From contig NC_087260.1 of the NCBI RefSeq assembly GCF_037042905.1, positions 2,480,001 to 2,544,000 on the forward strand: 64,000 nucleotides of DNA. Reading direction: 5' to 3'. A model generated the notes under the pieces. It did not search any database. It was not told the origin of the DNA and was given only the letters and a program-made list of their open reading frames with translations. The stretch's first letter is position 1. Each line of letters starts with the position of its first letter. Made by a program: the position numbers and the translations under genes. Of the stretch, positions 56,646 to 57,330 are shown piece after piece. The stretch is from Lytechinus pictus (taxonomy: Eukaryota).

Positions 56646-57330
56646 CTTATTTATGCAAATGGGCTTCAGAATAAAATGATTTATCCCGTGCTATATAGGC
56701 CTACTAAGAGAATAAATCTGAAATATAATACAGCATCTGTTGCGAATACTTGATCTGAATCCGGAAAGTATCTCACGAAAAGTGAATCACTCTTACCTCT
56801 GGAGCCCGCTTTTATATAATTTATGGATAGAATTACAAATTCAAAAAACCCATACTTATGAAAATCTCGATTGGTATTGCAGAATTTACATGAAGGAAAC
56901 GTTGCTCGTTGTAACTCTTACTCGAGCCCAGAGACATACCGTATTCTCATAGTTAATCTAAAAATAGATTGGACTTTTTTTCTGGTCATTGGGGATTCCA
57001 CTGTCTGCGCGCAATTTCGATTTTGATACCGGCAACAGACTGGGAGTTTCTCCATCTGGAAGGGCATCGTGGAAGGGTTGACAAGGCAACGAGGCAGTAG
57101 TGTTATCCCAGGGGTTGCCTGCCATGTAACCATTGCGCAATGTTACATCCCACCCGCCTGTTCAATGGATGGACTTATCACATACCGCGACCGTTCGTAC
57201 GAACCTGGATTGAGAGGATGACTCATCTCGGGGAATCCCCATCCTCAGCGATCTTGCCTAGTCTAGAAGCTCCAGACCCCAAAGCGCATTCTTTTTTTAT
57301 CCATATCCAGATATGCCTATTTATGACGTC
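56646..57330 (-). promoter_or_regulatory. Candidate inducible promoter and non-coding first exon of the TNF-family gene
   Basis: kB-like GGGGAATCCCC (57230-57240), GGGGATTCCA (56991-57000) and GGGAGTTTCT (57042-57051); AP-1 ATGACTCAT (57218-57226); C/EBP ATTGCGCAAT (57132-57141); CRE-like TGACGTC (57324-57330). On the minus strand: TATAAAAG (56816-56809), Inr-like TCACTT (~56783) and donor AAG|GTAAGA (56646/56645). Confidence 0.55.

Follow-up and report, generated by a model that had tools for sequence, protein, structure and literature searches.

Introduction

Modules of NF-kB, C/EBP, AP-1 and CRE sites drive the induction of TNF, IL6 and CXCL8 in vertebrates, and the kB and C/EBP sites of IL6 and CXCL8 lie close together, within ~160 nt of the start. 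To our knowledge, almost nothing is known about how cytokine genes are switched on at the DNA level in invertebrate deuterostomes. Comparison of Lytechinus with Strongylocentrotus sequence, two genera ~50 million years apart, is a classic way to find sea-urchin cis-regulatory modules, and most of the modules described in that manner belong to developmental genes. In S. purpuratus larvae exposed to Vibrio, homologues of nf-kB, cebp-alpha, cebp-gamma and atf2 and members of the TNF superfamily were transcriptionally regulated (Buckley et al., 2017, PMC5457136). The regulatory DNA of the TNF gene considered here lay outside that analysis. No paper naming the S. purpuratus gene LOC576628, and none analysing the regulatory DNA of this gene, was found among the papers that the literature searches returned.

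In this study, a 64,000-nt stretch of Lytechinus pictus DNA (the window; positions 2,480,001 to 2,544,000 of contig NC_087260.1) was evaluated. A compact, promoter-like module of ~520 bp was located on the minus strand, ~13 kb upstream of a TNF-family gene. The element is conserved and promoter-like, and from its sequence features it is a putative cis-regulatory module of the TNF ligand gene. As in the vertebrate TNF, IL6 and CXCL8 promoters, a TATA core was preceded by NF-kB, C/EBP (NF-IL6) and AP-1/CRE-type bZIP sites, the product was a TNF-family cytokine, and a bZIP site adjoined the kB site in Lytechinus. The initial annotation had called the region vertebrate-style, which was apt for the composition of the sites but not for their geometry. 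In contrast to IL6 and CXCL8, the kB and C/EBP sites of the urchins were positioned 315–460 nt before the TATA box and 100–122 nt apart. Moreover, the urchin module had no sequence homology with the vertebrate promoters, its conservation was shown only within echinoids, its perfect AP-1 site was not kept beyond Lytechinus, and the proposed transcript would have a non-coding first exon and a 5' UTR intron of 6.5–13 kb. The module points to the same classes of factor and of gene as were reported for the larval response (Buckley et al., 2017).

Like the described sea-urchin modules, the module was a self-contained stretch of a few hundred bp beside its proposed target, in which short, site-sized identical patches alternated with indels. 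It differed from the developmental ones in that it would serve an immune cytokine gene and that its key sites and spacing were kept as far as Diadema, across a much deeper split.

Materials and Methods

The whole window was compared with the S. purpuratus locus via sensitive blastn, and the pairwise alignment was made with MAFFT. The L. variegatus locus (L002) covered the equivalent of the window only as far as position 49644, short of the module. The sequencing runs were selected for their content of TNF exon 1, a criterion that did not depend on the hypothesis. Contig sets X1–X4 contained 77–90% of the sampled words of exon 1 and X15–X18 contained 81–100%, with X1 and X15 at 90–100%. X19–X21 were raw reads of rRNA-depleted RNA from the same species. 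X1, X15, X19 and X20 were mapped to window positions 55001–59000 at 90% likeness.

Results and Discussion

The TNF Ligand Gene and Its Orthologues

Exon 1 of the gene (43249–43575, minus strand) was 93% identical to the 325-aa L. variegatus LOC121429872 and nearly identical to the L. pictus model LOC129279005. Orthologues were present in S. purpuratus (LOC576628, locus L003), Diadema setosum (locus L004) and Diadema antillarum (locus L005), and the orthologues carried the TNF domain PF00229 (Pfam). A convergent Na/Ca-exchanger gene lay downstream of TNF in S. purpuratus and in both Diadema species, and this shared neighbour indicated that the orthologues were syntenic. In S. purpuratus and both Diadema species, the interval from the module to TNF contained no gene call. 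Full-length orthologues were on record only in genome assemblies, and when the exon-1 peptide was used to look for partial products (cDNA-like contigs with 5' UTR), no match was obtained.

Two further observations were made within the gene. In the public 376-aa protein model of L. pictus, ~70 residues come from the ORF at 39299–39655 (minus strand). These residues are missing from both the L. variegatus and the S. purpuratus orthologue; near the equivalent of 37.9 kb, L. variegatus uses short exons instead. The ORF may be an alternative or mis-predicted exon. A trinucleotide-type repeat in a TNF intron measured ~190 nt in L. pictus (37640–37830) and was expanded to ~2.5 kb in L. variegatus (L002 14060–16650).

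A Single-Copy Module Conserved Across Echinoids

The features of the locus are summarized in Table 1. All of the motifs that the initial annotation had listed were recovered at their places on the minus strand by direct reading and pattern counts.

Table 1. Features of the module and of the TNF ligand gene (window positions; a slash marks an exon–intron boundary).
Feature	Position	Strand	Remarks
Conserved non-coding block, promoter-like module	56765–57280	-	blastn, MAFFT alignment A1; single copy; GC island
CRE half-site GACGTCA	57324–57330	-	beyond the conserved block
NF-kB-type palindrome GGGGAATCCCC (also GGGGATTCCCC)	57230–57240	-	11/11 invariant in L. pictus, S. purpuratus, D. setosum and D. 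antillarum
AP-1 site TGAGTCA (also read TGACTCA)	57219–57225	-	4 nt from the kB site
GATA block GTATGTGATAAGTC	57172–57185	-	14/14 identical between L. pictus and S. purpuratus
C/EBP palindrome ATTGCGCAAT	57132–57141	-	inside the ATGTAAC..GTTACAT dyad
kB-like site GGAGAAACTCCC	57042–57053	-	S. purpuratus GGAGAAACCCCC, within identical GATGGAGAAAC
IRF/ISRE-half-like block AAAATCGAAATT	57013–57024	-	identical in S. purpuratus within ATCAAAATCGAAATT; predicted factor class
kB-like site GGAATCCCC	56991–56999	-	S. purpuratus GGAATTCCC at the aligned place
CCAAT box	56968–56972	-	within TCCAATCTAT.TTTAGAT, conserved in S. purpuratus
TATA box TATATAAAAG	56809–56818	-	S. purpuratus TATAAATA at the aligned place; Diadema TATATAAA at equivalent kB and C/EBP distances
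Inr-like TCACTTT	56779–56785	-	fits YYANWYY; predicted TSS, A at 56783
Proposed non-coding exon, ~138 nt	56646–56783	-	predicted; ends at donor AAG/GTAAGA, last exon base 56646
Acceptor (CT)nCCAG/, AG at 43594–43595	43573–43595	-	18 nt of 5' UTR, then TNF start codon at 43573–43575
TNF-superfamily ligand gene, coding range	34360–43575	-	proposed target gene of the module

The blastn alignment paired window positions 57195–56767 with 415–865 of the S. purpuratus locus at 65.5% identity over 458 nt (E 4e-42). In total, ~515 bp (57280–56765) were collinear with ~330–865 of that locus, 9.2–9.7 kb upstream of the ATG of the S. purpuratus TNF orthologue. The module was one of four non-coding blocks of the window that aligned with the S. 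purpuratus locus, all of them collinear; the others were 49968–49591, the short block 45871–45780 and 630 bp adjoining exon 1. Within the module, identical patches the size of single sites were separated by indels.

A GC island spanned ~56950–57290 (~52% GC vs. ~33% in the surrounding DNA). The initial annotation had named a high-copy repeat as a possible objection. The stretch had one match in the 811-Mb genome, its own locus, and read pile-ups occurred only in the flanking repeats, which ruled out a high-copy repeat or transposon fragment. A protein-coding exon was rejected as well, because there was no notable ORF and the indels relative to S. purpuratus were not multiples of three. The search of the whole 64-kb window for Rfam families gave no matches. 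At the upstream edge of the module, TATAAAAG occurs on the plus strand (57347–57354), pointing away from TNF; it was not conserved in S. purpuratus.

The grouping of short motifs could in principle have arisen by chance in DNA without function, or it could belong to a repeat. The strict triple of kB, AP-1 and TTGCGCAA sites within 350 bp or less was found in 3 of 400 Markov-simulated 64-kb windows (~0.75%), so several would be expected genome-wide. Hence, the motif cluster is unusual for one window but not, by itself, for a whole-genome scan, and its significance comes from its conservation across species. The single copy number, the E value of the S. purpuratus alignment, and the recurrence of the identical 11-mer, the site order and the spacing in Diadema all stood against a chance origin, which was refuted in practice by this conservation between genera and has a practically negligible probability.

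The initial annotation had proposed an alignment with other echinoid genomes. The module proved to be conserved in S. purpuratus, and its key sites and spacing recurred in two Diadema species, although a BLAST search of the module against Diadema gave no alignment. The kB 11-mer was present at L004 2811 and L005 2149, ~7.2–7.9 kb upstream of the syntenic TNF orthologue. It was followed, in order, by the kB-like GGGAATCCC, TGACGCAAT, a CCAAT box, TATATAAA and the donor AAG/GTAGGC. The C/EBP–ATF site was 122 nt after the kB site, the TATA box 315–329 nt further, and the donor 144 nt past the TATA box. Relative to the TATA box, the kB site, the C/EBP or C/EBP-type site and the last exon base were at −424, −324 and +170 in L. 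pictus; −461, −346 and +147 in S. purpuratus; −451, −329 and +144 in D. setosum; and −437, −315 and +144 in D. antillarum. Across the four species, the distance from kB to C/EBP was thus 100–122 nt and that from C/EBP to TATA 315–346 nt. Sequence comparison therefore shows that the order and spacing of the kB, C/EBP, TATA and donor elements were conserved in three echinoid genera, which makes chance very unlikely. This conservation, as read from aligned and matched sites, was shown within euechinoids.

As a separate observation, the pattern GGGGATTCCCC-N85-115-TTGCGCAAT occurred twice in the 811-Mb genome, and its reversed control did not occur. The second occurrence (C16:20994355-20994460; locus L007 1501–1606) was considered as a paralogous copy of the module and rejected, as it had no further similarity to the TNF module. 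This site is ~350–450 nt upstream of an ATG exon-like piece ending in a donor (ATGTCATTGTCAG/GTAAGG), and RCC1-repeat exons follow in the same orientation after ~15–19 kb.

Conserved Binding Sites in the Upstream Part of the Module

The symmetric kB site that had been pointed out initially was confirmed in all four species. It fits the consensus GGGRNWYYCC and was kept in Lytechinus, Strongylocentrotus and the two Diadema species; the 11-mer occurred once per orthologous upstream region, compared with ~0.0006 expected per 10 kb. By these measures, the site qualifies as a candidate NF-kB-responsive element under selective constraint. The initial annotation had paired it with a perfect AP-1 site. 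The pair does exist in L. pictus, but the perfect AP-1 site was not conserved: the S. purpuratus counterpart, TGATTCA, which lies 3 nt away from the kB site, is mismatched at one central position, and Diadema has no AP-1 site at the equivalent place. The perfect AP-1 site is thus, as far as the comparison reaches, Lytechinus-specific, seen in the L. pictus window alone, with the L. variegatus locus stopping short of the module. The GATA block, identical in S. purpuratus, had no match at this position in Diadema.

The C/EBP palindrome was also present as annotated. Its core was conserved to S. purpuratus, where TTGCGCAATG was identical at the site, but the flanking dyad arms were found only in Lytechinus. 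The conserved site (consensus TKNNGYAAK) reads TTGCGCAAT in L. pictus and S. purpuratus; its Diadema counterpart, at an equivalent distance, is TGACGCAAT, a C/EBP–ATF composite.

Two further kB-like sites had been listed initially, and both were present and conserved in S. purpuratus, the pairwise alignment retaining the patches GATGGAGAAAC(T/C)CCC and GGAAT(C/T)CCCAA, respectively. The CCAAT box had a Diadema counterpart, CCAATTTTAGA, ~205 nt before the TATA box of that genus, and an octamer-like ATG(T/C)AAAT was common to the L. pictus and S. purpuratus modules. The CRE-like site mentioned in the initial annotation could be traced to a half-site, but it is a weak call outside the conserved block and was not kept in S. 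purpuratus. The assignment of these sites to Rel/NF-kB, C/EBP or ATF, GATA and AP-1 factors is predicted from consensus matches and published larval immune data.

Putative Core Promoter, Candidate First Exon and Splice Sites

A TATA box and an Inr ~33 nt apart had been proposed, and both were found. The distance from the first T of TATAAAAG to the A of the Inr was 33 nt, and the TATA–Inr distance was the same in S. purpuratus; ATTCA(C/A)TTTT was kept at the Inr between the two species. The layout thus corresponds to a TATA/Inr core promoter, with a TATA box ~30 nt before a YYANWYY Inr. The IRF-like GAAAAGTGAA that had been read over the Inr was weak; the sequence was conserved as an Inr and not as an IRF site.

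The GTAAGA donor was confirmed as well. It scores 10.3, and one donor scoring at least 9 was located 144–170 nt past the TATA box in each of the four species, that is, in Lytechinus, Strongylocentrotus and Diadema. Judging from the density of sites, independent lineages are unlikely to have a strong donor at corresponding distances by chance, because donors scoring at least 9 occur at only 0.15–0.7 per kb on the gene strand of the upstream regions. The predicted 3' end of the candidate exon at 56646 reads ...CATAAATAAG. An upstream ATG lay inside the candidate exon of L. pictus and also inside that of S. purpuratus.

At the other end of the proposed intron, the start-codon exon begins at 43593, with the ATG at 43575. 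The acceptor before it, which had been noticed initially, was conserved as TCTCCAG/T in L. variegatus and S. purpuratus, the distance to the ATG in S. purpuratus being similar to the 18 nt of Lytechinus. The Diadema counterpart was TTTTCAG/, ~47 nt before its ATG. A polypyrimidine–CAG acceptor was thus present 18–47 nt before the ATG in all species, alongside the conserved donor, and a conserved acceptor in this position implies an upstream exon. The donor, the acceptor, the TATA/Inr core and the lack of an intervening gene together are laid out like a promoter followed by a short non-coding exon and a long 5' UTR intron. The best explanation of the module, at a probability of roughly 55%, would be a TATA-type TNF promoter, either the only one or an alternative one, whose non-coding first exon is spliced to the start-codon exon.

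An unlikely alternative is that the module acts as a distal enhancer only. Here, NF-kB, C/EBP and GATA factors would bind and the element would loop to a TNF promoter within 43594–44230, with the TATA box, Inr and donor being incidental or yielding enhancer RNA at most. Conserved site blocks split by indels are a typical enhancer pattern, and the ~630 bp upstream of the ATG (43594–44230, minus strand), adjoining exon 1, were strongly conserved in L. variegatus and S. purpuratus and partly to Diadema, in which a ~90-nt piece (43702–43793; TCTGATTTCCAGCC...GAAGCAG...ATTCC) was recognisable. However, the TATA–Inr spacing was kept between Lytechinus and Strongylocentrotus, the TATA box and single strong donor of Diadema were at matching distances, and the conserved acceptor before the ATG calls for an exon further upstream.

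The proximal block itself also bears on this alternative. It could contain a second, proximal TSS, and its role may be that of a proximal promoter or of an enhancer within the intron. The block had no conserved TATA box (the Lytechinus TATATAAACCAAT at ~44327 was not conserved) and contained many upstream ATGs, and the conserved acceptor was downstream of it. For these reasons, its sequence weakly favours the enhancer reading of the block. A palindromic GGAATATTCC was also observed within it.

RNA Evidence

The depth of X1, X15, X19 and X20 was zero over 56341–57814, which includes the module, the TATA box and the candidate exon; the raw runs were ~6% sampled, and no sample of the four is known to stem from an immune challenge. 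No read or contig in the four runs reached the candidate exon, and no loose end was found at 56646. A coverage hole alone proves nothing, and the first ~140 nt of an mRNA assemble poorly. X1 and X15 left unique DNA uncovered, which indicated that they were RNA-like and not whole-genome DNA. The RNA-like data hence contained TNF exon 1 but not the exon proposed upstream of it.

Coverage was limited to flanking repeats at 55.5–56.07, 57.8–58.08 and 58.6–59 kb. These interspersed repeats (55537–56072, 57815–58082 and 58619–59000) were heavily represented in the RNA runs, with contig depths reaching thousands. The reads were mostly 90–95% alike and were thus transcribed from other copies. Farther from the module, a long GAA-rich microsatellite (54185–54820; period 3, 12 or 149) gives its kilobase a strong purine skew.

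The zero depth disfavours the module as the sole constitutive promoter and does not argue against an inducible or alternative one. The initial reading of the region as the TNF promoter is therefore upheld in part: a conserved element tied to the TNF gene, a TATA–Inr pair, a donor and an acceptor are all there, but no RNA was seen over 56341–57814 in four runs. This result, with TNF exon 1 contained in X1 and X15, agrees with a distal enhancer, and the zero depth would also agree with a chance grouping of motifs.

The presence of exon 1 without the proposed exon would also fit a module that starts an unannotated transcript distinct from the TNF mRNA, such as an inducible lncRNA. Its later exons would lie within the 13-kb interval, perhaps in block 49591–49968. 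The promoter anatomy and the donor were conserved, which such a transcript would share, and the interval has conserved blocks with donor-like GT sites. Against it, no RNA came from the module or its unique flanks, no gene was called between the module and TNF in the three other genomes, the orientation and position relative to TNF were kept in three genera, and the conserved acceptor of TNF exon 1 needs a donor. A separate transcript is, on this evidence, decidedly improbable.

Block 49591–49968 (minus strand) matched S. purpuratus L003 5549–5960 at 66–73% identity. Its patches included GTAAACAAACCACC (forkhead- and Runx-like), TGGGGTTATCCC and a donor-like ACAAG/GTA. The block may function as an enhancer, or it may be a non-coding exon, either alternative or internal.

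Proposed Mechanism

If the module is the TNF promoter, Rel/NF-kB would bind the invariant GGGGATTCCCC palindrome, and a bZIP factor of the C/EBP or ATF type would bind TTGCGCAAT (TGACGCAAT in Diadema) 100–122 nt downstream. The GATA, additional kB-like and CCAAT sites, plus AP-1 in Lytechinus, may act as helpers. The bound factors would then recruit the transcription machinery to the TATA/Inr core 315–346 nt further downstream. Transcription would start near 56783 and run through a ~138-nt non-coding exon to 56646, which would be spliced to the acceptor at 43593 over a 5' UTR intron of ~13 kb in L. pictus, ~9 kb in S. purpuratus and ~6.5 kb in Diadema. The promoter is probably inducible, as predicted from its sites, and the module may be one of two TNF promoters; either property would explain the silence in the RNA examined. 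We infer the TSS, the 56646-to-43593 junction, the factor binding and the inducibility, and also that the transcript served is that of TNF and not a different one.

Conclusion

A wider reading would make the module an inducible echinoid TNF promoter in which the order and spacing of the NF-kB and C/EBP/bZIP sites have been fixed for well over 100 million years, following a deuterostome-ancestral inflammatory logic that is shared with vertebrates and did not arise by convergence. We regard this reading, taken as a whole, as speculative and unlikely. Shared ancestry of the induction logic with vertebrate TNF, IL6 and CXCL8 is offered as a hypothesis. If the ancestral reading were true, the locus would provide a directly testable invertebrate model of cytokine induction. 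If the non-coding first exon exists 13 kb upstream, the TNF gene model would be corrected. Furthermore, the compact single-copy module is a concrete target for mutation in a model organism with well-mapped gene-regulatory networks, and it allows one to ask whether the control of TNF-family cytokines by NF-kB and C/EBP predates the vertebrates.
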